Notes: generated from the sequence alone by a model not told the origin. Shown: positions 39,743 through 64,000, counted from the stretch's first letter. The stretch: DNA of 64,000 bases from Phaeosaccion multiseriatum (GCA_965112735.1 OZ218963.1:3264160-3328159); one strand, 5' to 3'. Translations and numbers: made by a program.

Positions 39743-42700
39743 TCATTCCTCCTTAACGAGAATTACAGCGCAGTACATTTGCACGGCCTCCCACTCCTCC
39801 TTGCTAATGGCCCGAGGTGGGGGGGGGGCTCTAGCAGGGGCTCTACCATACCTTTGCTGCTGCTGTTGAAGGTGCGCTCCCCCGACCCCCCCCATCCTGG
39901 ACAGCAAGCCAATGAACTGCTCCTCCTCACAGCAACGAGCGATGAAGTGACTGAAGTTCTCTGCGAGAAGCATGCGGAAGCCCTCGGCTCGTGCCATACG
40001 GGCAAGCGTGGGGAGGTGCACGAGAAACTCTTTGCAACCAGTGACTGCGTCTCCCAATTGGAATCTGCGCGGGCAGAGGGTGGAGAGCACAGGAAAAAGA
40101 GCGAGAGGTGAGATGAGCAGAGACAAGAGACGGAGAGAGGAGAGGTGAGATTGAGGAAGGGAGAGGAGGGATGGTAAAGAGAGAGGGGGGGGGGGAGGGC
40201 GACGGTACAGGGTGGAGGGAGAAAACCCCCTTGAAATGCCAGTCTTGTGCTTAACACAAGGGTTAACCTTTGCGTAATGTGCGTACGTACCTGTATGCGT
40301 CTCCGAAGGCATTCTCGCTCTCGTCCAGAGACTTGAGCCGCTCCAACACCGCGGCCCTCTCTCCCTCCATCTCCAGACGGTACAGACCATTCCCAAAGGC
40401 CACCCCCCCTTTCTCATCTTTCTCCTCCTCCTGCTGCTGCTTCCCCGTCTTGCCAGCACTGCCCTCCTGACTTGCCCCTTGCTCAGTACTTCCCCCGCCA
40501 CCGTCACCAACAGCACCACCTTCCGCACCATTGGTAACGCCGGAACTTAACCCAGGTGCGACTCCTTGTCCTCCCGCTCCTCCTCCTACTGCCCCTCCTC
40601 CTGCTGCTGCTCCTGCTGTTGCTCCTGCTGCTGCTGCCCCAAAGGCGCGTTGGGTAATGACGCGGTAGTCGGGAACCGTGAGAAGCAACCTCCCCCCAGG
40701 GAGGAGCATTTTCCCTACATTGGCGAGCGTGGTTTCCAGGTTGGCACGTGAATCGCACACGTAGTGTAGGGTGAATTGCGCCGCGACGGCACCGAACAGC
40801 GGGAAGCGAGCTGACGGTTGACTACCTTCTGTCTCCCCCTCTCCATCCCCTTGCTCCACCCGCTCCACCCCAGCAGCTCCTATGCCCTCATTGGCCCCAT
40901 CTCCTCCGCCACTTTCATCCATCAGCAATGCAGCTACCCTCGACACCAGGTCAGAGTCCGCCATACTGCCCTGTAACGTCAGCCCTCTCCAGCCCAGTTT
41001 CTTCTTGTGAACATCGCTCCGTGCTCCTTCTCCTCGCCCCCCTCCTGCTCCTCGTTTCTCCCTCCCTACCCCTCCTCCTCCTCCTCCTCCTCCTCCTCCT
41101 CCTCCTCCTCCTACCCGTCTATTGCTCTCCTTCATCAGCCCATCTGCTCTTCTCTGTGCCTCCATCAAGGCCACTCCTGACACATCGACTCCGACCCACA
41201 AGCCCCGCGCAGCAATTCTACTCCACTTTAGCAAATCGCCGCCCCTGTGCACTCACGGGATGACACGCGGCCGGCCCCGCGGGGGAAGAGACGGAAGAGG
41301 GTTTCACTATTAGGCAACCATCGGCAGCTCAATCAATCCCTCGTTTGGGGCAAAGGGTTGTTCTTCTCCTAGCAAGTCACTAGATATCGGCGGAGGGGGA
41401 GGAGCCAGGAGCAAGCACGTCCACGTCAAAATCCAAGTCAAGTCCCCTCCCTCCTCCATACCTTCCACACCCAAGCTCGAGCACCGCTGCTCGGTTGCCC
41501 TCCAATGCACCTTCTGCGAAGAAGCGTGTATGGGGAAAGGGAAGGAGACACGATGAGCAAAGGGAACACATCTACACAAGCTTCAAGCGACGTACAAGTC
41601 CACAGCACCCCACAGCGAGCACGGCACACTGCCCTCATCGGTAGGTGCCATAACAGGAGCTTCGCGCTCGAGGGCACGCGTGGAGGGGCGCGAAGTGGAG
41701 GCCCATCGTTAGACACGAGCTAAGACCTCATCACGACCCCTCTCCTCTCCTCTCCTGCGGTCAACCTCGAGCCCGGGGCGGATGGGGAGCGATCGTTGAA
41801 GACTAAAAGTCTCTCTGACAAAAGCACCTGCCTGCTAAGCACCTGCGGGAGAGCCAAGCAGGACTTGGTTCAATCCGTCTTGGCATACGACCCCCTCCCC
41901 CCTCCCCAATGCGACCATCCCCCCGCACTCCGACTTGCTTCTTGCTTACGTTTGCCTCCTTGCCGTTGATGCCCCCCGCTCCCTCCGCCTCTCCTGTCGC
42001 CTCTCCTACCCCCGTGGCTGCCGCCGTTGCTGCGACTGCGGCTGCTGCTGACTAGCCCTGAGATAAGTGCGGGAGGAATGCCCGCAAGAGGGGGGAGGGA
42101 GGCCAAGGAAAGCGATCCATACAATGCCGCCTCGGAGTCCTTGCCCGGTGGGGCAGCGGACAGGTCCTCTTCTCTGGCCATGTTGATCATTACTGCCTTG
42201 AGCCTGCGGGCACACACACAGAGAGAGGGGGGAGAGGGAGGGGAAGAGAGACGGAAAGCAGTTGCGGAATCAATCCGAGCAGAAAATCAGGGAGTTTGAG
42301 GCTAGCGCCGTTACAATGAGGAAATCAGGGTAGAGAAAAGAAATGAACGGAACATGGATATACGTCGGGCAATTCATTGAGGCCTTGGCCGCGAAAGGTG
42401 GGAACCCAGTTGGGAATGAGCGTCACGACGGCGAGAATCTCTCTATCTCCCCCTGCTCACTACTCGCCAGTTGTGCAGTTCCTCAATATGGCAGTACTCA
42501 CCAGTTGTGCAGTTTCCTCAATACGGCGATACCGCCGTCGAGTGCTTCGCCTTGGTTTCGTGCCGCTTGCCTTTCGTCATAATGCTCTGCTGCTGCTGCG
42601 TCACCCCCTCCCGCGACCTCCATGCCACCCGTACCGCGAGCAGCGGCGGTAGGCTGAGTAGCGGTAGGTTTGGGTCCTCCTCCGTCGCCGCTGATCGTGA

Positions 42701-44385
42701 CGTTGGCATGACTGCTCATGTTTCTTCCGGGGGGTAGACTTGAGAGTTCCGAAGAAAGCTCCTCGAAAGTAACGTTCTCGGCTACTGCTTCCAGCACGCC
42801 CCACGCTGTGGTGCATTGACGATACAGAGTTGATCAGAGAGATTTGGGGGCTACAGTTAGACACACTCTCTCACACGCCAAGGGGACTCAAACTAAAAGT
42901 GACAGATAGCATGCAATAAAAAATTGTGGCCAAGCAGAGGCAAGAGATGAGATGACGCATCTGTTCCCTTGCCATGCGAATACGTCGTAGTATAGAGTCA
43001 ACGAATACCTTGGTCTTTGGCGGTGATGGTAGGCATGCAAGACTCTACTCACCATTTCCGAGGCTGTTTGGTTGGGCCTTGTCCAGGCGAGGCCCCACGA
43101 GGTGCCATCTTCCGTCCGAGCTGTCAAAGGAGCATTCAATGATCACCGTCGACTGAAGGGGGAGAGGGGGAGAGGAGGAGAGCCAAAGAAAGAGAAGAGA
43201 GGTAGGAGAGAGGAGGGAGCAGCGCAGCATGATGAAGCATGACGAGTTAACTGAGCACAGGTCATGTTGACAGGGGTTGAAGCCGCACCACCACACACAG
43301 AGAGAAAAGGTAGTTCTGCGAAGTATCGGGGGCGAGGAGAAGATGGGTTCGAGTTTGAGTTTGAGGTGCGGTGCGGTCCCCGCGGTGAGGAAGATGTGGT
43401 CTGCAAGTCCAGGAGTGGTCCAAGCGTGGCCGTGCGGACTTTGAGCCCTACCCGACACAAGGACGTACCAGCCCTCGGCCCGCAGACTCGAGCAAGCGGC
43501 GCTTCTCCGCGGTGGTCAAGACAACTTGCGCTAGGCGTACCTCCCCCTGCCCTGAGCGGACGCTGACGGACACACTGCTCTCTCCTCCTCCTCCTCCTCC
43601 TCCTCCTCCTCCTCCTCCTCCTCCTCCTCCTCCTCCTCCTCCTGCTGCTGCTGCTGCTCCTCCTCCTCTTCCTCCTCCTCCCCCCTTCCCTCGATTGCCA
43701 CGCCCCCGGTCCCATCCTCCTCCGCTGAGATCTTTGCATCGAACCGAAAAGTCCACCGTCAGCAGCTGTTGGGGCTTCCACTTGAGGACGTGATAGCTGT
43801 TGGAGAATAAAAGAAAAAAGCCCCCACCCCGGTGCACGCCCCAGTAAGGTAAGGTACGCAAGATAGACAGAGTACACAGGGGACAGACAGAGGTTGAGAG
43901 AAGGCTCTCTCATTGCGGTCCGAGTGCGGTTGGGAAAAGGAAGCACATGATGTGACGGGCGCACGGCTTTGCAGGAGTGCCGGCACATCTACGTAATTGC
44001 GCATATCAATGAAGGAAGAGGTGTACAGCAACATGTGCTTTCCCTTTCCCGCAACGCCCCAACCGTCCTCGTGCGGTGCGGAACAGGCGGCAGGACAGAC
44101 AGGACCCGACCGCGGCAAGGAGGAAAATACAGCATAGCAACACTGCCACCTAGTTTTAATTCATTCAACCCTCACCTGTACCAGCTCAATTTCGAAGGGG
44201 TAAACACCACCCCGTCCGTTGGTCCGCTGCACACCAAGTCACCGTCGGCGCCACCTGCGGAAGGAGGGGAGGACGGAGGAAGGAGTGGAAGAGGCGCGCA
44301 CTCAAAACGATGAGACCCTCCCATTCATCGGTTGTGTGTGAGGCCTCGAAACCCTTACACCGGGGGAGGGACATTTCCTTCCTTA

Positions 44386-44418
<33 letters not shown>

Positions 44419-47196
44419 GCACGCACACATGCTTGCAAGCGCTCCCTCTTCTCACCTCTCCCTCTCTGCCCCATGCCTTCGCAACTTACACACACATGTT
44501 CGCGTGCTCACTCCTCTCACCTTCTGTCCCTCGCTGCCCCATGACCAACGGTGCGATTTGACCGATATTTCGCAGCGGCAAAAACCGTTTGCACCGCAAG
44601 GGCAACAATGCAGTCAAGGGCGTGGCCTGCTGCTGGTGGTGGTGGTGCTGCTGCTGCTGCCCAAGGCTCACTCTGGTCTCCAGGGCGGCGATGCGCTCCG
44701 ATAGATGTTGTTTCGCCCCCCACTCCACCCCCCCAAGCTGGGCCACATCGAAGGCCAAAAAGTACTGCGACTTGTTGCCTCTACTGCTCCAGGCTGCTGC
44801 TCCTGCTGCCGCTGAGCCCCCTTCTGGCCGCCCCCCTGGGGGGTCCGAGTCCATCAGCTCCCCATCCAGAATGCACGGATGCCCTTGACCCTGACCCTCC
44901 GCGGAGCATAGCACATCTGCGTAGGCGGTGGCTAGTTCCACGGAGGAGGACTGATGCAGGCCCAGCTGTCGATCCATCAGGAGGAGAAGGGGTGGGGAGT
45001 CTGCTCCCCCTCCTTCTCCTTCGTGATCAGGACCACCAGCCGTTACCATTCCCGCAGGCAGGACGAAGAGCAAGTGCCTAACTCCGTCGCTCTTTTCGCA
45101 GACAAGGTAGTCGGAGCCGGCATTCCTCTTCAAGTCACGCAAATTGCTACGCCGGAACGCGGTGGCCCTTGGGCCCGGCGAGTCTTTCGCTTTGAGGTAA
45201 GCATCAGCTGAGTATGAGGGCAACAGTCTGCGCCACTCCTTGGTGCCGGTAAGGAGCTCCAGCACGAGCCGCTTGAGATGCTGTGTGCGAGCTGACTTCT
45301 CGGGCAAGGCCACCAAGGGGGGCACACGGGGGTCAGCAGTCCCGATGGTGGCGGAGGTGGGAGAGGGAGAGAAGTGCTGGTGCTGCTGCTCACCACCTTG
45401 AACAGCTGGAGGCAGCGGCAGCGGCAGGGAGTTCCATTCTCCTTCCCCTTCCGCTTCCGCCCGTCCTCCCTCTGTTGACGCACTCCCTCCTGCATCTGCT
45501 GCTTTCGCTGTTGCTGTTGCTGGTGCTGCTTCTGCAGGTGGAACTGGGTGCGACACAGGGAAGAAGTCACAGAACTTGCTTGTGGCCATGACATAGTCGC
45601 TGATGGATCTGCCCTCCTTGGCCTGGTGGGCTGTGGGGTTGGAGGAGAGGGGTCGAACGGAAACGGTCCACGGAGGTGCTGAGCGTTTCGGAATTTCCGG
45701 ACCAGTAAGTAAGACTATGAGGGCTGGAAAGTAAACAGTTTACTCGCGTCAGAGGGGAAGTGTTTGAGCCAAAATCCTAGAAAAGAGCGACATCCGACCC
45801 TCTCTCTCTCTCTTCTCACCCAAGACCTCAAGCTTCTGCACGAGTTCTCCGTCCGTCTTCAGCACGGCGTCGCTGTCGGCCATCGAGCGTGTGTACTCCG
45901 GTACAATCACGCAGGAACCCAGGGGGTTGCGCTGATCAAGGAGTGCAGAGTAATACAGAAACCAAGCCCCACGTTAGAAACCTAAACCTTCTCTCACCGA
46001 TCGTAAGCTCACTCCGCTCTCTACCAAGCAACAACAATATATCAACACCAACCACCACATGTGTACACGCAGACGTTTTCAAAAACCTTGCCTTCTACAC
46101 ATACACACTGCCGTGCGATTCACTTCGTCAGTGGGGAGCACGTGCTCTGTCCGCTCTCACCTCAAACTTCTCCGCGTGGTTGTCAATGAGAATGGTGTTC
46201 CTGCGATCAAACTGCGGAAACACTTGCCACACCTTGGCAATCTCCTTGAGAAAGAGGGGCTTCTTGGGGCTTACAAACGAAGTCCGCGGCCACAGGGAGG
46301 TGCTATCCTCCTGGTCAAACACAAAGAGCACTTGATCTTGATATCGGTCGAACAGCTCCATTTCGATGTTCGCGCGCTTGCCACAGCTCCATAGAGCCAC
46401 AACAAAGTTCTTGAAGCAGAAATCAAGGAAGTCCTCAAGGTGCGGTCTTACTACTACTCCTCCTCCCCCTCCTCCTCCTCCTCCTCCTCCTCCTGGGCCC
46501 TTCTTGTGGCGTTTATCAAAGGGCAGGCGATCGACCAGCACACCGTTCAGATCCAGGATGAGGAGTGGCCTCTTAGGGTCGAGCATTGGCGGAGCGAGTA
46601 GCTCAAACAGTCTTTTTGTTAGGTCAACCTTCTTCACTACACACCGCCCCTGCCAGCCCACCCCCACCCCGTACAGACGGGCATCTCCCGCGCGAAGTAG
46701 GCCGTCTTTCTCCAAAGGCCGCTGCAGGGGGGGCTCTCCACACACCACTTCCACGCGCAAGAAGACCCCAAGCGTGGGGTGGACATTTGTGGCTCGGGCG
46801 ACAACCACAGCACCCACGCGCAGCACCTCCAGAGGCTCCACCTGCAAGCAAAAGGGTGCGGATAAGACGGATATGGTACCACATGGGCGAGGACACCAAC
46901 TCCTCCTCGGCTAACCGTACCTGCCGTTGCCGCCCATTGGATTGCTGGTGCTGTTGCTGTTGCTGGTGCTGATGCTGGTGCTGCTGCTGGTGCTGGTGCC
47001 TCTGCTGGTGCTGGTGCAGCTGTTGATTTTGTCCTCGGTGCTTCGAAGCTACTCCTCCATCGTTTGTATTTCTTGTCTCACGCTTCCAGCGGTTGTTCGT
47101 GGGAAGCGGTTGGAACTGTGGTGGGGTCTCCATAGCGTGGGGATCTGGCTTTTGAAGCAGGTCCACGCTGCTCGAGGGTAAAGCGAGGGTGTGCAT
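39743..47196 (-). CDS. Multi-domain mRNA capping enzyme: S1/OB-like + FCP1/NIF-type HAD phosphatase + RNA guanylyltransferase + cap guanine-N7 methyltransferase (~12 exons)
   Basis: HAD: LILDLNGVLV, RPHLEDFL, ALWS, LFLKEI..VW, NTILIDN..K..RNP. GTase: YLVCEKSDGVR, ILDGEL, FLAFDV, TDGVVFTP, LKWKP..TVDF, IIECSF, RLDKAQPN. MTase: AEHYD..LRKLHNWLKAVMI, VLELGCGRGGDLLKW, VGVDVS, QFTLHY, PGGRLLLTVPD, EFLVH, EWEAVQMY. All junctions from the HAD exon onward are GT-AG with matching phase. The exact start codon is uncertain (47196 or 47133). Confidence 0.82.
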
Positions 47197-54838: not shown

Positions 54839-55586
54839 AACAATACTGACATTCAACAGATGACGACGTCATTAAAGTTCTTCTACGCAATTGCTACGGC
54901 TACCGAGACGCGGTTGCCAGCCCTTGCACATGGGGGAAGACAAAGCCACCGGTCCCGGTGTGGCCCTCGAACGTCAAACCTCCCACCCTCGCCGCTTCTC
55001 ATCGGAGCTGCACAGGCCCATCAGCCATGTACGCCAGCTACGACACGGGAGTTGGGTGGGCTGCCCCACGGGAGCGATACACACCTGATCGGCGAAGATG
55101 ACAGCAAGACGGTGGGTGAAAATCGAGGGATGGAGGGACCCGGCAACTGCTCAGACCTCGAACATACCCCTTCCTCCAGCCCCCGTCGCTGTTCGATAGG
55201 ACTCCACGCTAAGGAAGGACAGCGACCCACCCCGGGGCCTCACCCTCTGCCAAGCAGTTCACCAACGCTCACCTTCATTGAAGTTTCTGAATACTGTGAG
55301 ATTCATTTCGCTGGGGAAGAGCGAAGAGCGTGCAAAGAGCAAGCAGACGAGGAGTGTCACGAGTGTAAGCGAAGGTTCACCGACGCAAGAATAGGCGAGA
55401 TGGGAAGTTGCTGACGCACACCTGTAAAATATTGTCCTGGTAGCATACTAAGCACGTTGGATAGGTCACAAAATATAGTCTTCCACTAGGGTTTACACTG
55501 CACCTGCTCCTGTTCACAGAAGACACTCTGGGCAACAACCTAAAACCTACCCTGTCGTAACACTACCGTATAAAGCAGGGCAATGG

Positions 55587-58500
55587 TTAGGGTTAGGCCA
55601 GGGCCAGGGCCAGGCCAGGGCCAGGCCAGGCCAGGCCAGGCCAGGCCAGGCCAGGCCAGGCCAGGCCAGGCCAGGCCAGGCCAGGCCAGGCCAGGCCAGG
55701 CCAGGCCAGGCCAGGCCAGGCCAGGCCAGGCCAGGCCAGGCCAGGCCAGGCCAGGCCAGGCCAGGCCAGGCCAGGCCAGGCCAGGCCAGGCCAGGCCAGG
55801 CCAGGCCAGGCCAGGCCAGGCCAGGCCAGGCCAGGCCAGGCCAGGCCAGGCCAGGCCAGGCCAGGCCAGGCCAGGCCAGGCCAGGGCCAGGCCAGGCCAG
55901 GCCAGGCCAGGCCAGGCCAGGCCAGGCCAGGCCAGGCCAGGCCAGGCCAGGCCAGGCCAGGCCAGGCCAGGCCAGGCCAGGCCAGGCCAGGCCAGGCCAG
56001 GCCAGGCCAGGCCAGGCCAGGCCAGGCCAGGCCAGGCCAGGCCAGGCCAGGCCAGGCCAGGCCAGGCCAGGCCAGGCCAGGCCAGGCCAGGCCAGGCCAG
56101 GCCAGGCCAGGCCAGGCCAGGCCAGGCCAGGCCAGGCCAGGCCAGGCCAGGCCAGGCCAGGCCAGGCCAGGCCAGGCCAGGCCAGGCCAGGCCAGGCCAG
56201 GCCAGGCCAGGCCAGGCCAGGCCAGGCCAGGCCAGGCCAGGCCAGGCCAGGCCAGGCCAGGCCAGGCCAGGCCAGGCCAGGCCAGGCCAGGCCAGGCCAG
56301 GCCAGGCCAGGCCAGGCCAGGCCAGGCCAGGCCAGGCCAGGCCAGGCCAGGCCAGGCCAGGCCAGGCCAGGCCAGGCCAGGCCAGGCCAGGCCAGGCCAG
56401 GCCAGGCCAGGCCAGGCCAGGCCAGGCCAGGCCAGGCCAGGCCAGGCCAGGCCAGGCCAGGCCAGGCCAGGCCAGGCCAGGCCAGGCCAGGCCAGGCCAG
56501 GCCAGGCCAGGCCAGGCCAGGCCAGGCCAGGCCAGGCCAGGCCAGGCCAGGCCAGGCCAGGCCAGGCCAGGCCAGGCCAGGCCAGGCCAGGCCAGGCCAG
56601 GCCAGGCCAGGCCAGGCCAGGCCAGGCCAGGCCAGGCCAGGCCAGGCCAGGCCAGGCCAGGCCAGGCCAGGCCAGGCCAGGCCAGGCCAGGCCAGGCCAG
56701 GCCAGGCCAGGCCAGGCCAGGCCAGGCCAGGCCAGGCCAGGCCAGGCCAGGCCAGGCCAGGCCAGGCCAGGCCAGGCCAGGCCAGGCCAGGCCAGGCCAG
56801 GCCAGGCCAGGCCAGGCCAGGCCAGGCCAGGCCAGGCCAGGCCAGGCCAGGCCAGGCCAGGCCAGGCCAGGCCAGGCCAGGCCAGGCCAGGCCAGGCCAG
56901 GCCAGGCCAGGCCAGGCCAGGCCAGGCCAGGCCAGGCCAGGCCAGGCCAGGCCAGGCCAGGCCAGGCCAGGCCAGGCCAGGCCAGGCCAGGCCAGGCCAG
57001 GCCAGGCCAGGCCAGGCCAGGCCAGGCCAGGCCAGGCCAGGCCAGGCCAGGCCAGGCCAGGCCAGGCCAGGCCAGGCCAGGCCAGGCCAGGCCAGGCCAG
57101 GCCAGGCCAGGCCAGGCCAGGCCAGGCCAGGCCAGGCCAGGCCAGGCCAGGCCAGGCCAGGCCAGGCCAGGCCAGGCCAGGCCAGGCCAGGCCAGGCCAG
57201 GCCAGGCCAGGCCAGGCCAGGCCAGGCCAGGCCAGGCCAGGCCAGGCCAGGCCAGGCCAGGCCAGGCCAGGCCAGGCCAGGCCAGGCCAGGCCAGGCCAG
57301 GCCAGGCCAGGCCAGGCCAGGCCAGGCCAGGCCAGGCCAGGCCAGGCCAGGCCAGGCCAGGCCAGGCCAGGCCAGGCCAGGCCAGGCCAGGCCAGGCCAG
57401 GCCAGGCCAGGCCAGGCCAGGCCAGGCCAGGCCAGGCCAGGCCAGGCCAGGCCAGGCCAGGCCAGGCCAGGCCAGGCCAGGCCAGGCCAGGCCAGGCCAG
57501 GCCAGGCCAGGCCAGGCCAGGCCAGGCCAGGCCAGGCCAGGCCAGGCCAGGCCAGGCCAGGCCAGGCCAGGCCAGGCCAGGCCAGGCCAGGCCAGGCCAG
57601 GCCAGGCCAGGCCAGGCCAGGCCAGGCCAGGCCAGGCCAGGCCAGGCCAGGCCAGGCCAGGCCAGGCCAGGCCAGGCCAGGCCAGGCCAGGCCAGGCCAG
57701 GCCAGGCCAGGCCAGGCCAGGCCAGGCCAGGCCAGGCCAGGCCAGGCCAGGCCAGGCCAGGCCAGGCCAGGCCAGGCCAGGCCAGGCCAGGCCAGGCCAG
57801 GCCAGGCCAGGCCAGGCCAGGCCAGGCCAGGCCAGGCCAGGCCAGGCCAGGCCAGGCCAGGCCAGGCCAGGCCAGGCCAGGCCAGGCCAGGCCAGGCCAG
57901 GCCAGGCCAGGCCAGGCCAGGCCAGGCCAGGCCAGGCCAGGCCAGGCCAGGCCAGGCCAGGCCAGGCCAGGCCAGGCCAGGCCAGGCCAGGCCAGGCCAG
58001 GCCAGGCCAGGCCAGGCCAGGCCAGGCCAGGCCAGGCCAGGCCAGGCCAGGCCAGGCCAGGCCAGGCCAGGCCAGGCCAGGCCAGGCCAGGCCAGGCCAG
58101 GCCAGGCCAGGCCAGGCCAGGCCAGGCCAGGCCAGGCCAGGCCAGGCCAGGCCAGGCCAGGCCAGGCCAGGCCAGGCCAGGCCAGGCCAGGCCAGGCCAG
58201 GCCAGGCCAGGCCAGGCCAGGCCAGGCCAGGCCAGGCCAGGCCAGGCCAGGCCAGGCCAGGCCAGGCCAGGCCAGGCCAGGCCAGGCCAGGCCAGGCCAG
58301 GCCAGGCCAGGCCAGGCCAGGCCAGGCCAGGCCAGGCCAGGCCAGGCCAGGCCAGGCCAGGCCAGGCCAGGCCAGGCCAGGCCAGGCCAGGCCAGGCCAG
58401 GCCAGGCCAGGCCAGGCCAGGCCAGGCCAGGCCAGGCCAGGCCAGGCCAGGCCAGGCCAGGCCAGGCCAGGCCAGGCCAGGCCAGGCCAGGCCAGGCCAG

Positions 58501-61500
58501 GCCAGGCCAGGCCAGGCCAGGCCAGGCCAGGCCAGGCCAGGCCAGGCCAGGCCAGGCCAGGCCAGGCCAGGCCAGGCCAGGCCAGGCCAGGCCAGGCCAG
58601 GCCAGGCCAGGCCAGGCCAGGCCAGGCCAGGCCAGGCCAGGCCAGGCCAGGCCAGGCCAGGCCAGGCCAGGCCAGGCCAGGCCAGGCCAGGCCAGGCCAG
58701 GCCAGGCCAGGCCAGGCCAGGCCAGGCCAGGCCAGGCCAGGCCAGGCCAGGCCAGGCCAGGCCAGGCCAGGCCAGGCCAGGCCAGGCCAGGCCAGGCCAG
58801 GCCAGGCCAGGCCAGGCCAGGCCAGGCCAGGCCAGGCCAGGCCAGGCCAGGCCAGGCCAGGCCAGGCCAGGCCAGGCCAGGCCAGGCCAGGCCAGGCCAG
58901 GCCAGGCCAGGCCAGGCCAGGCCAGGCCAGGCCAGGCCAGGCCAGGCCAGGCCAGGCCAGGCCAGGCCAGGCCAGGCCAGGCCAGGCCAGGCCAGGCCAG
59001 GCCAGGCCAGGCCAGGCCAGGCCAGGCCAGGCCAGGCCAGGCCAGGCCAGGCCAGGCCAGGCCAGGCCAGGCCAGGCCAGGCCAGGCCAGGCCAGGCCAG
59101 GCCAGGCCAGGCCAGGCCAGGCCAGGCCAGGCCAGGCCAGGCCAGGCCAGGCCAGGCCAGGCCAGGCCAGGCCAGGCCAGGCCAGGCCAGGCCAGGCCAG
59201 GCCAGGCCAGGCCAGGCCAGGCCAGGCCAGGCCAGGCCAGGCCAGGCCAGGCCAGGCCAGGCCAGGCCAGGCCAGGCCAGGCCAGGCCAGGCCAGGCCAG
59301 GCCAGGCCAGGCCAGGCCAGGCCAGGCCAGGCCAGGCCAGGCCAGGCCAGGCCAGGCCAGGCCAGGCCAGGCCAGGCCAGGCCAGGCCAGGCCAGGCCAG
59401 GCCAGGCCAGGCCAGGCCAGGCCAGGCCAGGCCAGGCCAGGCCAGGCCAGGCCAGGCCAGGCCAGGCCAGGCCAGGCCAGGCCAGGCCAGGCCAGGCCAG
59501 GCCAGGCCAGGCCAGGCCAGGCCAGGCCAGGCCAGGCCAGGCCAGGCCAGGCCAGGCCAGGCCAGGCCAGGCCAGGCCAGGCCAGGCCAGGCCAGGCCAG
59601 GCCAGGCCAGGCCAGGCCAGGCCAGGCCAGGCCAGGCCAGGCCAGGCCAGGCCAGGCCAGGCCAGGCCAGGCCAGGCCAGGCCAGGCCAGGCCAGGCCAG
59701 GCCAGGCCAGGCCAGGCCAGGCCAGGCCAGGCCAGGCCAGGCCAGGCCAGGCCAGGCCAGGCCAGGCCAGGCCAGGCCAGGCCAGGCCAGGCCAGGCCAG
59801 GCCAGGCCAGGCCAGGCCAGGCCAGGCCAGGCCAGGCCAGGCCAGGCCAGGCCAGGCCAGGCCAGGCCAGGCCAGGCCAGGCCAGGCCAGGCCAGGCCAG
59901 GCCAGGCCAGGCCAGGCCAGGCCAGGCCAGGCCAGGCCAGGCCAGGCCAGGCCAGGCCAGGCCAGGCCAGGCCAGGCCAGGCCAGGCCAGGCCAGGCCAG
60001 GCCAGGCCAGGCCAGGCCAGGCCAGGCCAGGCCAGGCCAGGCCAGGCCAGGCCAGGCCAGGCCAGGCCAGGCCAGGCCAGGCCAGGCCAGGCCAGGCCAG
60101 GCCAGGCCAGGCCAGGCCAGGCCAGGCCAGGCCAGGCCAGGCCAGGCCAGGCCAGGCCAGCCAGGCCAGGCCAGGCCAGGCCAGGCCAGGCCAGGCCAGG
60201 CCAGGCCAGGCCAGGCCAGGCCAGGCCAGGCCAGGCCAGGCCAGGCCAGGCCAGGCCAGGCCAGGCCAGGCCAGGCCAGGCCAGGCCAGGCCAGGCCAGG
60301 CCAGGCCAGGCCAGGCCAGGCCAGGCCAGGCCAGGCCAGGCCAGGCCAGGCCAGGCCAGGCCAGGCCAGGCCAGGCCAGGCCAGGCCAGGCCAGGCCAGG
60401 CCAGGCCAGGCCAGGCCAGGCCAGGCCAGGCCAGGCCAGGCCAGGCCAGGCCAGGCCAGGCCAGGCCAGGCCAGGCCAGGCCAGGCCAGGCCAGGCCAGG
60501 CCAGGCCAGGCCAGGCCAGGCCAGGCCAGGCCAGGCCAGGCCAGGCCAGGCCAGGCCAGGCCAGGCCAGGCCAGGCCAGGCCAGGCCAGGCCAGGCCAGG
60601 CCAGGCCAGGCCAGGCCAGGCCAGGCCAGGCCAGGCCAGGCCAGGCCAGGCCAGGCCAGGCCAGGCCAGGCCAGGCCAGGCCAGGCCAGGCCAGGCCAGG
60701 CCAGGCCAGGCCAGGCCAGGCCAGGCCAGGCCAGGCCAGGCCAGGCCAGGCCAGGCCAGGCCAGGCCAGGCCAGGCCAGGCCAGGCCAGGCCAGGCCAGG
60801 CCAGGCCAGGCCAGGCCAGGCCAGGCCAGGCCAGGCCAGGCCAGGCCAGGCCAGGCCAGGCCAGGCCAGGCCAGGCCAGGCCAGGCCAGGCCAGGCCAGG
60901 CCAGGCCAGGCCAGGCCAGGCCAGGCCAGGCCAGGCCAGGCCAGGCCAGGCCAGGCCAGGCCAGGCCAGGCCAGGCCAGGCCAGGCCAGGCCAGGCCAGG
61001 CCAGGCCAGGCCAGGCCAGGCCAGGCCAGGCCAGGCCAGGCCAGGCCAGGCCAGGCCAGGCCAGGCCAGGCCAGGCCAGGCCAGGCCAGGCCAGGCCAGG
61101 CCAGGCCAGGCCAGGCCAGGCCAGGCCAGGCCAGGCCAGGCCAGGCCAGGCCAGGCCAGGCCAGGCCAGGCCAGGCCAGGCCAGGCCAGGCCAGGCCAGG
61201 CCAGGCCAGGCCAGGCCAGGCCAGGCCAGGCCAGGCCAGGCCAGGCCAGGCCAGGCCAGGCCAGGCCAGGCCAGGCCAGGCCAGGCCAGGCCAGGCCAGG
61301 CCAGGCCAGGCCAGGCCAGGCCAGGCCAGGCCAGGCCAGGCCAGGCCAGGCCAGGCCAGGCCAGGCCAGGCCAGGCCAGGCCAGGCCAGGCCAGGCCAGG
61401 CCAGGCCAGGCCAGGCCAGGCCAGGCCAGGCCAGGCCAGGCCAGGCCAGGCCAGGCCAGGCCAGGCCAGGCCAGGCCAGGCCAGGCCAGGCCAGGCCAGG

Positions 61501-64000
61501 CCAGGCCAGGCCAGGCCAGGCCAGGCCAGGCCAGGCCAGGCCAGGCCAGGCCAGGCCAGGCCAGGCCAGGCCAGGCCAGGCCAGGCCAGGCCAGGCCAGG
61601 CCAGGCCAGGCCAGGCCAGGCCAGGCCAGGCCAGGCCAGGCCAGGCCAGGCCAGGCCAGGCCAGGCCAGGCCAGGCCAGGCCAGGCCAGGCCAGGCCAGG
61701 CCAGGCCAGGCCAGGCCAGGCCAGGCCAGGCCAGGCCAGGCCAGGCCAGGCCAGGCCAGGCCAGGCCAGGCCAGGCCAGGCCAGGCCAGGCCAGGCCAGG
61801 CCAGGCCAGGCCAGGCCAGGCCAGGCCAGGCCAGGCCAGGCCAGGCCAGGCCAGGCCAGGCCAGGCCAGGCCAGGCCAGGCCAGGCCAGGCCAGGCCAGG
61901 CCAGGCCAGGCCAGGCCAGGCCAGGCCAGGCCAGGCCAGGCCAGGCCAGGCCAGGCCAGGCCAGGCCAGGCCAGGCCAGGCCAGGCCAGGCCAGGCCAGG
62001 CCAGGCCAGGCCAGGCCAGGCCAGGCCAGGCCAGGCCAGGCCAGGCCAGGCCAGGCCAGGCCAGGCCAGGCCAGGCCAGGCCAGGCCAGGCCAGGCCAGG
62101 CCAGGCCAGGCCAGGCCAGGCCAGGCCAGGCCAGGCCAGGCCAGGCCAGGCCAGGCCAGGCCAGGCCAGGCCAGGCCAGGCCAGGCCAGGCCAGGCCAGG
62201 CCAGGCCAGGCCAGGCCAGGCCAGGCCAGGCCAGGCCAGGCCAGGCCAGGCCAGGCCAGGCCAGGCCAGGCCAGGCCAGGCCAGGCCAGGCCAGGCCAGG
62301 CCAGGCCAGGCCAGGCCAGGCCAGGCCAGGCCAGGCCAGGCCAGGCCAGGCCAGGCCAGGCCAGGCCAGGCCAGGCCAGGCCAGGCCAGGCCAGGCCAGG
62401 CCAGGCCAGGCCAGGCCAGGCCAGGCCAGGCCAGGCCAGGCCAGGCCAGGCCAGGCCAGGCCAGGCCAGGCCAGGCCAGGCCAGGCCAGGCCAGGCCAGG
62501 CCAGGCCAGGCCAGGCCAGGCCAGGCCAGGCCAGGCCAGGCCAGGCCAGGCCAGGCCAGGCCAGGCCAGGCCAGGCCAGGCCAGGCCAGGCCAGGCCAGG
62601 CCAGGCCAGGCCAGGCCAGGCCAGGCCAGGCCAGGCCAGGCCAGGCCAGGCCAGGCCAGGCCAGGCCAGGCCAGGCCAGGCCAGGCCAGGCCAGGCCAGG
62701 CCAGGCCAGGCCAGGCCAGGCCAGGCCAGGCCAGGCCAGGCCAGGCCAGGCCAGGCCAGGCCAGGCCAGGCCAGGCCAGGCCAGGCCAGGCCAGGCCAGG
62801 CCAGGCCAGGCCAGGCCAGGCCAGGCCAGGCCAGGCCAGGCCAGGCCAGGCCAGGCCAGGCCAGGCCAGGCCAGGCCAGGCCAGGCCAGGCCAGGCCAGG
62901 CCAGGCCAGGCCAGGCCAGGCCAGGCCAGGCCAGGCCAGGCCAGGCCAGGCCAGGCCAGGCCAGGCCAGGCCAGGCCAGGCCAGGCCAGGCCAGGCCAGG
63001 CCAGGCCAGGCCAGGCCAGGCCAGGCCAGGCCAGGCCAGGCCAGGCCAGGCCAGGCCAGGCCAGGCCAGGCCAGGCCAGGCCAGGCCAGGCCAGGCCAGG
63101 CCAGGCCAGGCCAGGCCAGGCCAGGCCAGGCCAGGCCAGGCCAGGCCAGGCCAGGCCAGGCCAGGCCAGGCCAGGCCAGGCCAGGCCAGGCCAGGCCAGG
63201 CCAGGCCAGGCCAGGCCAGGCCAGGCCAGGCCAGGCCAGGCCAGGCCAGGCCAGGCCAGGCCAGGCCAGGCCAGGCCAGGCCAGGCCAGGCCAGGCCAGG
63301 CCAGGCCAGGCCAGGCCAGGCCAGGCCAGGCCAGGCCAGGCCAGGCCAGGCCAGGCCAGGCCAGGCCAGGCCAGGCCAGGCCAGGCCAGGCCAGGCCAGG
63401 CCAGGCCAGGCCAGGCCAGGCCAGGCCAGGCCAGGCCAGGCCAGGCCAGGCCAGGCCAGGCCAGGCCAGGCCAGGCCAGGCCAGGCCAGGCCAGGCCAGG
63501 CCAGGCCAGGCCAGGCCAGGCCAGGCCAGGCCAGGCCAGGCCAGGCCAGGCCAGGCCAGGCCAGGCCAGGCCAGGCCAGGCCAGGCCAGGCCAGGCCAGG
63601 CCAGGCCAGGCCAGGCCAGGCCAGGCCAGGCCAGGCCAGGCCAGGCCAGGCCAGGCCAGGCCAGGCCAGGCCAGGCCAGGCCAGGCCAGGCCAGGCCAGG
63701 CCAGGCCAGGCCAGGCCAGGCCAGGCCAGGCCAGGCCAGGCCAGGCCAGGCCAGGCCAGGCCAGGGCCAGGCCAGGCCAGGCCAGGCCAGGCCAGGCCAG
63801 GCCAGGCCAGGCCAGGCCAGGCCAGGCCAGGCCAGGGCCAGGCCAGGCCAGGGCCAGGCCAGGCCAGGGCCAGGGCCAGGGCCAGGCCAGGGCCAGGCCA
63901 GGCCAGGCCAGGCCAGGGCCAGGCCAGGCCAGGGCCAGGCCAGGCCAGAAGCCAGGGCCAGGCCAGGCCAGGCCAGGCCAGGGGCCAGGGCCAGGGCCAG
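55587..64000 (+). repeat. Terminal telomere-like array: TTAGGG-TTAGG then (CCAGG/CCAGGG)n to window end
   Basis: Begins GGTTAGGGTTAGG then switches to CCAGGG/CCAGG, G-rich strand pointing outward, about 8.4 kb. Confidence 0.85.

Follow-up and report, generated by a model that had tools for sequence, protein, structure and literature searches.

A fused capping gene and its domains

We examined a 64,000-nt stretch of eukaryotic DNA (about 57% GC) from the ochrophyte alga Phaeosaccion multiseriatum. (We call this whole stretch the window; exon and intron coordinates are positions within it.) From 47196 to 39743, its minus strand holds a single nuclear gene with 12 exons, which encodes a protein of 1,523 amino acids (aa). 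The predicted protein contains, in this order, an S1-like fold, a NIF/FCP-type HAD domain, an mRNA guanylyltransferase (GTase), and a cap guanine-N7 methyltransferase (MTase). An earlier note on this DNA had proposed such a protein in a single open reading frame (ORF), and it had suggested that the HAD domain might take the place of the RNA 5'-triphosphatase of other capping enzymes.

In the rebuilt gene, the exons join into a frame of 4,572 nt (a multiple of 3) that stays open up to one stop at its end. All 11 introns begin with GT and end with AG, and their lengths range from 79 to 436 nt. We recovered all ten of the splice junctions that were listed in the earlier note, with two corrections: the junction that was written as AY|RF is instead a split arginine codon (AG|A), and the list had missed an eleventh intron (RQ|VEP, intron 1 in Table 1). 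Exon 1 is not conserved among the protein's relatives. Its start codon is a provisional assignment, given a second in-frame ATG at 47133.

About 11% of the protein is low-complexity sequence that is rich in Gly, Ala, or Gln and is located in loops. Runs of GGA or GGN codons (at 46470-46505, 43590-43700, 41060-41120, and other sites) encode 12-24 consecutive glycines. They fall within the HAD, OB, and methyltransferase domains, where the relatives show variable loops. We also compared the window to contigs from individual runs. The contigs from run X2 lack one base at 42227, at 44728, and at 46727; the other three runs, from that one sample, match the window at these places. We treated the deletion at 44728 as a sequencing error: this site is part of a stretch of eight consecutive Gs in exon 4, and the three other runs do not have the deletion. 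The window's length at this site preserves the reading frame.

The two C-terminal domains were readily identified. Pfam's model for the GTase (mRNA_cap_enzyme) reached 26.4 bits with just the exon that contains motif I, and a local profile that we built from fungal and viral enzymes matched residues 495-918 (E = 4.5e-17). As the earlier note had stated, GTase motifs I, III, IIIa, IV, V, and VI are all present and collinear, from K536-S-D-G to R884-L-D-K (Table 1). The closest sequences in the Protein Data Bank (PDB) are the fungal GTases Pce1, Ceg1, and Cgt1, and the GTase domains of the protein's relatives reach the cut-offs for both mRNA_cap_enzyme and mRNA_cap_C. The methyltransferase assignment held up as well. 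Pfam's mRNA_G-N7_MeTrfase (PF03291; cut-off 26.6 bits) scored 51.6 bits on exon 11 and 37.7 bits on exon 12 (profile positions 227-314). The SAM-binding motif (L1095-G-C-G-R-G-G-D) and the cap-binding motif (F1256-T-L-H-Y) are present, and the best match in PDB is Ecm1 (1ri1; E = 9.5e-7). Judging from its sequence, the protein belongs to the capping GTase family and to the RNMT/Abd1 family.

The N-terminal module is more unusual. Pfam's NIF model (PF03031) scored 39.2 bits on exon 2, with a cut-off of 21.8. We predicted the structure with AF2 from exon 2 and 22 relatives (mean pLDDT 82.8; the model stops 37 residues short of the end of the HAD domain) and compared it to other structures with Foldseek. 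The C-terminal two thirds of the model matched UBLCP1, SCP1-3, CTDNEP1, TIM50, and Fcp1, each with a probability of 1.00. The first 85 or so residues matched the S1 domains of eIF2alpha, M. tuberculosis S1, SPT6, and GSP13 (root-mean-square deviation 2.2-3.5 Å; E around 2e-3), in keeping with a five-stranded OB barrel. Pfam's S1 model had no match in an exon-level scan of the protein, so we assign the N-terminal S1-like domain at the level of the fold, which is predicted to be RNA-binding. Overall, the S1/OB-like and NIF/FCP1-type calls of the earlier note were both upheld by the AF2 model, the Foldseek matches, and the NIF profile match. The S1-HAD module is present just once in the genome, and the S1 fold accompanies the HAD domain throughout the capping-linked relatives.

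We then considered the active site of the HAD domain. By sequence profile, the nearest protein of known structure is UBLCP1 (3shq; E = 2.7e-10). Motifs II (W243-S244-C), III (K286-P-L-F), and IV (D312-N313-H) are intact. The W-S-C, K-P-L, and D-N residues show little or no variation among 23 relatives, and they align to UBLCP1. Motif I is D189-L-N191-G-V-L: the nucleophilic aspartate is kept, and the second aspartate of DxDxT is replaced by asparagine. The DxDx(T/V) pattern of the NIF family is thus absent, and the HAD domain is an atypical member of this fold family. In other words, the window protein has the nucleophile, the motif II serine, the motif III Lys-Pro-Leu, and the motif IV Asp-Asn in common with UBLCP1 and SCP1/FCP1, its best matches, but it differs from them at the second aspartate. 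It also has three features that occur only in the capping-linked HADs: a cysteine after the motif II serine (WSC), an L-W-P-R-x-S insert, and D[ND]HxEKFE at motif IV (DNHxEKFE in the window protein). Where UBLCP1 and FCP1 have UBL or BRCT domains as partners, the window protein has S1 and the capping domains.

We also asked if the N-terminus could hide a known type of 5'-end-processing domain. A motif scan found no cysteine-phosphatase loop ([HV]Cx5R) anywhere in the protein, no ExEx[KR] motif of the triphosphate tunnel metalloenzymes (TTMs) in residues 1-360, and no P-loop motif in the fusion protein. A viral TTM profile (described below) gave no score on the N-terminal 470 residues. We therefore rejected a hidden cysteine-phosphatase, TTM, or P-loop domain; the fold is that of a HAD. 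As far as sequence can tell, the protein is neither a TTM nor a cysteine-phosphatase triphosphatase.

Support for the fusion

We are highly confident that the gene, with its S1-HAD-GTase-MTase fusion, is real in P. multiseriatum. The link between the GTase and the MTase needs no splice because the junction sits inside exon 8. In contrast, the link between the HAD domain and the GTase hangs on one element, intron 3.

The alternative is that the gene model is an artefact: there would be two genes, one for the HAD domain that ends within intron 3 (...AQTLPL stop) and one for the GTase-MTase that begins at the methionine of MATSKF (45589). The two would be only about 160 nt apart. Intron 3 does contain an in-frame stop, and 40 nt of exon 4 precede the ATG. 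Also, the only four runs found to cover the locus (from one sample) are DNA runs, none of them recorded as RNA, which leaves this alternative some room. Sequences from the runs form contiguous genomic contigs across the locus. Because these runs are DNA and show no spliced joints, the case for the HAD-GTase fusion rests on the relatives. (A loose end at the boundary of exon 3, at 45820, might have indicated an alternative splice. We rejected this: its sequence maps to another contig, C9, so the loose end is a chimera in the assembly graph.)

Several pieces of evidence from the intron and the relatives make the two-gene model very improbable. First, the splice sites of intron 3 are canonical, and its acceptor is pyrimidine-rich. 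Second, the 30 residues ahead of the MATSKF methionine are conserved in the relatives, while the methionine itself is not. The peptide that spans the junction of exons 3 and 4 (L..LA...D..Y......FFP..HP..PP) aligns with uninterrupted proteins from the relatives, and exon 3 aligns with the C-terminal part of their NIF domains. Third, relatives contain the entire protein in one ORF or transcript. One (P0019) is a single ORF of 3,480 nt on scaffolds of metagenomic DNA from Tara, and another (P0005) is a single ORF on a different metagenomic contig. Among peptides from the MMETSP transcriptomes, P0147 (from Pedinella) has the HAD and GTase domains together, and P0213 has all three domains.

To find these relatives, we used the S1-HAD exon as the query for HMMER, which identified 1,064 proteins. 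We scanned the nine long nearest relatives with Pfam, and NIF, mRNA_cap_enzyme, and mRNA_cap_C were present in all nine. The methyltransferase (mRNA_G-N7_MeTrfase) was present in eight; it was missing from P0001, which the NCBI record gives as a partial protein. Among 150 listed representatives of the 1,064 relatives, about 22 have a HAD domain followed by a GTase. The best match is from Chrysoparadoxa australica, which belongs to the PX clade (59% identity in the HAD domain). Other named orthologs are from Chrysophaeum taylorii, Pelagophyceae sp. CCMP2097, Pedinella, and Nannochloropsis/Microchloropsis (in Nannochloropsis, EWM26676), so that the named orthologs span at least four classes of ochrophytes. 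The proposal of one ORF with four parts is thus borne out by the open 12-exon frame, by the Pfam matches of individual exons, and by relatives with the same layout.

Table 1. The exons and selected introns of the fused gene (positions in the window) and the two other capping genes of the genome (positions on their contigs).
Feature	Position	Strand	Content
Exon 1, aa 1-92	46921..47196	-	Start codon; Q/H-rich low-complexity N-terminus; donor GTACGG
Intron 1 (RQ|VEP)	46920-46842	-	Separates the Q/H-rich exon 1 from exon 2
Exon 2, aa 93-319	46161..46841	-	S1-like OB fold (~aa 93-175) followed by the NIF/FCP-type HAD core
Exon 3, aa 320-356	45820..45931	-	C-terminal strand and helix of the HAD domain (RNPLGSCVIVPEY...LEVL)
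Intron 3	45631..45819	-	GTGAGA...CCACAG, 189 nt; in-frame stop if retained
Exon 4, aa 357-726	44521..45630	-	Conserved linker (..FFPVSHP..PP) and GTase nucleotidyltransferase domain
GTase motifs in exon 4	within 44521..45630	-	I (K536-S-D-G), III (D612-G-E), IIIa (F647-L-A-F-D)
Exon 5, aa 727-752	44176..44254	-	GTase motif IV (T-D740-G-V-V-F-T-P)
Exon 6, aa 753-862	43469..43796	-	GTase motif V (K758-W-K-P); the OB domain begins here, split by a long Gly run
Exon 7, aa 863-895	43053..43152	-	OB domain; GTase motif VI (R884-L-D-K)
Exon 8, aa 896-996	42502..42805	-	GTase OB domain ends and methyltransferase begins in this exon (..EHYDERQ..LRKLHNW)
Exon 9, aa 997-1081	41950..42203	-	N-terminal helix of the MTase (LKAVMI); low-complexity insert
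Exon 10, aa 1082-1098	41462..41513	-	First half of the SAM-binding motif (VLELGCG)
Exon 11, aa 1099-1416	40291..41244	-	MTase core (GGDLLKW, VGVDVS, QFTLHY, PGGRLLLTVPD); Gly/Ala-rich inserts
Exon 12, aa 1417-1523 and stop	39743..40064	-	C-terminal part of the MTase (FQLGDAV..EFLV, EWEAVQMY)
TTM-GTase gene	contig C15 (genome G000), ~2,290,540-2,297,580 (L016:743-7779)	-	15 GT-AG exons, 645 aa
Stand-alone RNMT/Abd1-type cap methyltransferase	contig C11 (genome G000), ~545,300-548,700 (L017)	-	Own non-catalytic N-terminal extension

Canonical capping genes and the HAD-linked family

Elsewhere in the genome, we found a canonical set of capping enzymes. A gene on contig C15 encodes a TTM joined to a GTase. 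We reached this locus from a weak second match to the GTase, by reading the frames and splicing the exons. The model is an open frame that ends without a stop, short of the C-terminus, and this modelled part contains no MTase. Within the N-terminal 260 residues, the elements of the TTM signature follow one another in order (VEIEARLG, DLRLSVARE, RLRQR, WRADLT, and EVEIE), and the remainder is a GTase in which all six motifs are present. Once spliced, the N-terminus scored 22.5 bits against the viral TTM profile (E = 4e-9 for one sequence), while the best of 500 shuffled controls scored 4.5 bits. Like the window protein, the C15 protein has a six-motif capping GTase behind a domain in the position of 5'-end processing, but this domain is a canonical TTM, and the two GTases are just 24% identical.

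This TTM is easily missed. A six-frame search of the genome with Pfam's PF02940 found nothing, which is a false negative because the exons are short; on the unspliced ORFs of C15, Pfam reported the TTM only at E = 0.17. One of the TTM exons, when compared to PDB sequences and to the ESM Atlas, gave nothing useful. The viral TTM profile was built from 29 ORFs that adjoin viral GTases, and such ORFs match Pfam's mRNA_triPase at 44-46 bits. More broadly, many contigs in IMG/VR have a small GTase gene and then a TTM triphosphatase gene (mRNA_triPase at 44-46 bits) within 1-2 kb. The TTM genes at L065:11765-12538, at L089:11570-12160, and at about 27 other IMG/VR loci represent triphosphatases and GTases that are encoded by separate genes.

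A cap methyltransferase is encoded on contig C11. One of its exons scored 78.9 bits against PF03291, which is above the scores of the fused MTase. It stands alone, because it begins with its own non-catalytic N-terminus. The TTM-GTase and this methyltransferase make up a complete canonical set, so the gene in the window is a second, paralogous capping enzyme. We think that the window protein is likely to be functional alongside the canonical set. The earlier note had named a canonical triphosphatase elsewhere in the genome as half of what would count against its proposal for the HAD domain, and this half is present.

There is a parallel in trypanosomes. In T. brucei, Cgm1 has a GTase and then a cap N7-MTase in one polypeptide, as in the window protein, and it coexists with a separate TTM triphosphatase, a second GTase, and a second MTase. 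The genes on C15 and C11 resemble these companion enzymes. (The likeness to Cgm1 is in the layout of domains.) Unlike the window protein, Cgm1 has no S1 or HAD module, and we know of no trans-splicing in ochrophytes.

We then built a maximum-likelihood tree of GTase domains and scanned IMG/VR with the S1-HAD alignment. All of the HAD-linked GTases fall on one side of a branch with 95/91 support, separate from the TTM-GTase of C15. The latter groups with fungal Ceg1 (97/85, with a warning about long branches), and small viral GTases group with both. Since all of the HAD-linked GTases lie in one clade, the S1-HAD-GTase core arose once and has been more constant than the attached MTase. By sequence comparison, then, the window protein is a member of a conserved and monophyletic family of HAD-linked GTases.

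This family includes members from a very different kind of genome. One IMG/VR contig (L018/L023), which was binned as a giant-virus MAG (GVMAG-S-3300012936-62), encodes a 659-aa protein with S1, HAD (D-I-N-G-I-L), and GTase domains and no methyltransferase. Its relatives, with 35-94% identity, are encoded on contigs from marine metagenomes (L019-L021 and L103); they have 650-710 aa and also lack the MTase. These contigs are intron-free and densely packed, with 20% GC. The gene order is shared: an RNase H-like gene, a helicase similar to SKI2/DDX60, and the capping gene, with genes for ankyrin proteins, glycosyltransferases, and translation factors as well. A search of the ESM Atlas with an ortholog had no usable match.

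These AT-rich contigs raise the possibility that the family began in giant viruses and was later acquired by ochrophyte algae (or moved in the opposite direction), and that it has a specialised role in algae, such as cytoplasmic recapping or the capping of a subset of transcripts. This would be compatible with any of the mechanisms for the HAD domain that we discuss below. The GVMAG bin and the syntenic, intron-free contigs point to a viral link, and in the tree the AT-rich proteins lie inside the HAD-linked clade, among the algal ones, although their exact position is poorly supported. The complete canonical set elsewhere in the genome, and the precedent of two parallel capping systems in trypanosomes, are consistent with a specialised role. 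On the other hand, just 1 of the 80 IMG/VR loci with a related GTase has the HAD domain. Within 10 kb of the AT-rich S1-HAD-GTase genes, we found no capsid, polymerase, or other hallmark gene, so the viral label for these contigs is only a candidate one. The adjacent helicases resemble cellular SKI2/DDX60 and XPB rather than poxvirus-type factors, and the algal gene has 11 introns and a host-like composition. On balance, we consider this history unlikely.

The end of the window is occupied by a perfect array of the pentamer AGGCC (55595-63982; 8.4 kb, about 1,675 copies). Directly before it, at 55580-55595, are two TTAGGG-like units (ggttagggttagg). A subtelomeric satellite is one possible identity of the array; an atypical end of the chromosome is another.

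Possible roles of the HAD domain

What might the HAD domain do? To our knowledge, in every fused capping enzyme that has been described, a domain that prepares the 5' end of the RNA lies N-terminal to the GTase. These N-terminal domains are cysteine phosphatases in animals and plants, TTMs in poxvirus D1 and mimivirus R382, and a P-loop kinase in T. brucei Ce1. Poxvirus D1, mimivirus R382, and ASFV NP868R resemble the window protein in that three domains are arranged in the order of the reactions, with the GTase before the MTase. They differ at the N-terminus, which is a TTM (a beta-barrel with two ExE strands) instead of S1 and an FCP-type HAD. Similarly, the capping enzymes of metazoans and plants have a phosphatase-fold domain directly before the GTase, but this has the PTP fold with HCx5R, a motif that the window protein lacks, and there is no fused MTase.

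By analogy, the window protein may carry out the steps of capping as follows. The S1 and HAD domains would handle the phosphorylated 5' end of the RNA, which is the least certain step. The GTase would transfer GMP to the diphosphate end via a Lys536-GMP intermediate. Once GpppN is formed, the MTase would methylate the N7 of the guanine, as in bifunctional enzymes of the Cgm1 type. Besides the nucleophilic aspartate, the HAD domain has kept Ser244, Lys286, and Asp312-Asn313, and these residues bind phosphate and Mg2+ in its family. One option is that the HAD domain attacks a phosphoanhydride, namely the gamma-phosphate of triphosphate-ended RNA (pppRNA), for which a proton donor would not be needed. 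(P-type ATPases take the gamma-phosphate of ATP and have no aspartate at this position.) Another option is that the HAD domain clamps the phosphate end and passes it to the GTase without hydrolysis.

The most far-reaching possibility is that S1 together with a D-x-N-G type of HAD forms a fourth, previously undescribed class of RNA 5'-triphosphatase, or a covalent acceptor of the gamma-phosphate, that works via an aspartyl-phosphate with no general acid, and that it had a single origin with a distinct lineage of GTases. We would give this a probability of roughly 0.3. A role at the RNA end is favored by the invariant S1 partner, by the position ahead of the GTase, by the clade-specific residues in the site, and by co-inheritance: the S1-HAD module travels with one monophyletic clade of GTases in two very different kinds of genomes.

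Several observations weigh against this proposal. First, the genome encodes a canonical TTM, so no triphosphatase is missing. Second, we know of no characterized enzyme of the FCP/SCP/UBLCP1 family that acts on anything but phosphoproteins. Third, asparagine at the Asp+2 position should also slow the hydrolysis of the aspartyl-phosphate. Fourth, the HAD domain lacks the general-acid aspartate (DLNGV) just as plant FCP1-homology proteins outside of capping do. Among the nearest relatives, 141 of 157 aligned HAD domains have the D-x-N motif, including "FCP1 homology" proteins of plants (these contain NIF domains in tandem and DUF724), which have no link to capping; so the D-x-N subfamily is far wider than capping. 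The plant proteins (D-[VIL]-N-G-L-L) and the fungal NIF proteins with DXNXT have the same type of motif I as the window protein, but they have no capping fusion and none of WSC, LWPRxS, or DNHxEKFE. (In the plant proteins, WTS or WSS, TGF-NT, and DDSPYKAL are found at the equivalent places.) Finally, a 2026 survey lists the fungal DXNXT proteins as predicted pseudophosphatases (PMC13216928).

Experimental data on another enzyme with DxDxT bears on the missing aspartate. In T4 Pnkp, changing the Asp+2 residue to asparagine (D167N) eliminated the phosphomonoesterase activity, left about 7% of the activity on 2',3'-cyclic phosphate, and caused the protein to sequester phosphate-ended RNA tightly (PMC3592404). 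By this comparison, the loss of the general acid would be more compatible with an activated phosphoanhydride as the substrate than with a phosphoserine monoester (PMC3592404). In the literature that was openly available to our search, we did not find data for mutants of D98 in SCP1.

These results could also fit a dead or substrate-trapping pseudophosphatase. The HAD domain would bind a phosphoprotein, most plausibly the Ser5-phosphorylated C-terminal domain (CTD) of Pol II, or else another transcription factor; it would recruit the GTase-MTase to the template, and the TTM enzyme would provide the triphosphatase activity. The closest relatives with solved structures (UBLCP1, SCP1-3, CTDNEP1, TIM50, and Fcp1) are phosphoprotein phosphatases or, in one case, a pseudophosphatase. 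The retention of phosphate-ended substrate without turnover by the T4 Pnkp mutant, the classification of the fungal DXNXT proteins, the canonical TTM, and the extent of the D-x-N-G subfamily beyond capping all point the same way. But the nucleophile, the residues of motifs II to IV, and the clade-specific residues are invariant, which is more than is usual for a docking surface, and the S1 fold, with its predicted binding of RNA, is a constant companion of the HAD domain. Furthermore, the module and its GTase are also found in AT-rich genomes that may belong to giant viruses, and if transcription there is cytoplasmic, the CTD would be irrelevant. We regard a pseudophosphatase as possible but not probable.

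A third potential role is an active Ser/Thr phosphatase for phosphoproteins (similar to a CTD phosphatase) that is tethered to the capping enzyme, with another residue such as His314 or Glu316 as the general acid/base. This is close to an alternative that the earlier note had raised: its NIF-type fold was confirmed, and its phosphatase activity is made less plausible by the asparagine in motif I. Because asparagine replaces the general acid/base, the HAD domain seems poorly suited to hydrolyzing phosphoserine monoesters. Membership in the NIF family would fit with such an activity, as would the invariant His-x-Glu-Lys-Phe-Glu after motif IV, which is confined to the capping-linked clade. However, the general-acid aspartate is replaced in most of the subfamily (the 141 of 157 domains above), and we know of no precedent in this family for a general acid that has moved. 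The equivalent change abolishes monoesterase activity in T4 Pnkp, a DxDxT enzyme (PMC3592404). An active phosphoprotein phosphatase is improbable.

Overall, the architecture and the parallel capping genes are solid, and the function of the HAD domain can be described only tentatively. That it acts on, or holds, the 5' polyphosphate end of RNA has somewhat less than an even chance, judging from the sequences. That it is a true gamma-phosphatase on pppRNA is more doubtful. (What probability remains after the RNA-end, phosphoprotein-binding, and protein-phosphatase roles belongs to some other function.) The earlier suggestion that the HAD domain is a triphosphatase is favored by its position, its site, and its co-inheritance with a clade of GTases, while the asparagine at the general acid and the canonical TTM count against it. 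In particular, the claim of a new class of triphosphatase is weakened by having a canonical TTM in the same genome.

Public databases already contain orthologs of the window protein, which bear automatically assigned names such as "mRNA (guanine-N(7))-methyltransferase" or "hypothetical protein". In the literature that we searched, we found no description of a fusion of a NIF/HAD domain with a capping enzyme. So, regarding the earlier note's concern that the architecture might already be annotated and characterized, there are database entries and no characterizing paper that we could find. From the sequences compared, the S1-HAD module appears to have no described counterpart among capping enzymes.

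Capping enzymes have long served as markers for the deep evolution of eukaryotes and viruses, and for 25 years the field has been defined by two mechanisms of triphosphatases, the TTM and the cysteine phosphatase. Here, a conserved lineage of GTases carries S1 and an atypical HAD where other fused capping enzymes have a 5'-end-processing domain. If the HAD domain works on RNA ends, this would be a new chemistry for triphosphatases, and it would be a new job for the large D-x-N "pseudophosphatase" subfamily of plants and fungi. If it is instead a clamp for the phosphorylated CTD, capping would be linked to transcription by a new route. The question is directly testable, because there are intron-free orthologs and because Nannochloropsis is among the named orthologs. 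Under both readings, capping in ochrophytes would run through two systems side by side, a situation with a parallel in trypanosomes, and one may ask how RNAs are divided between them.

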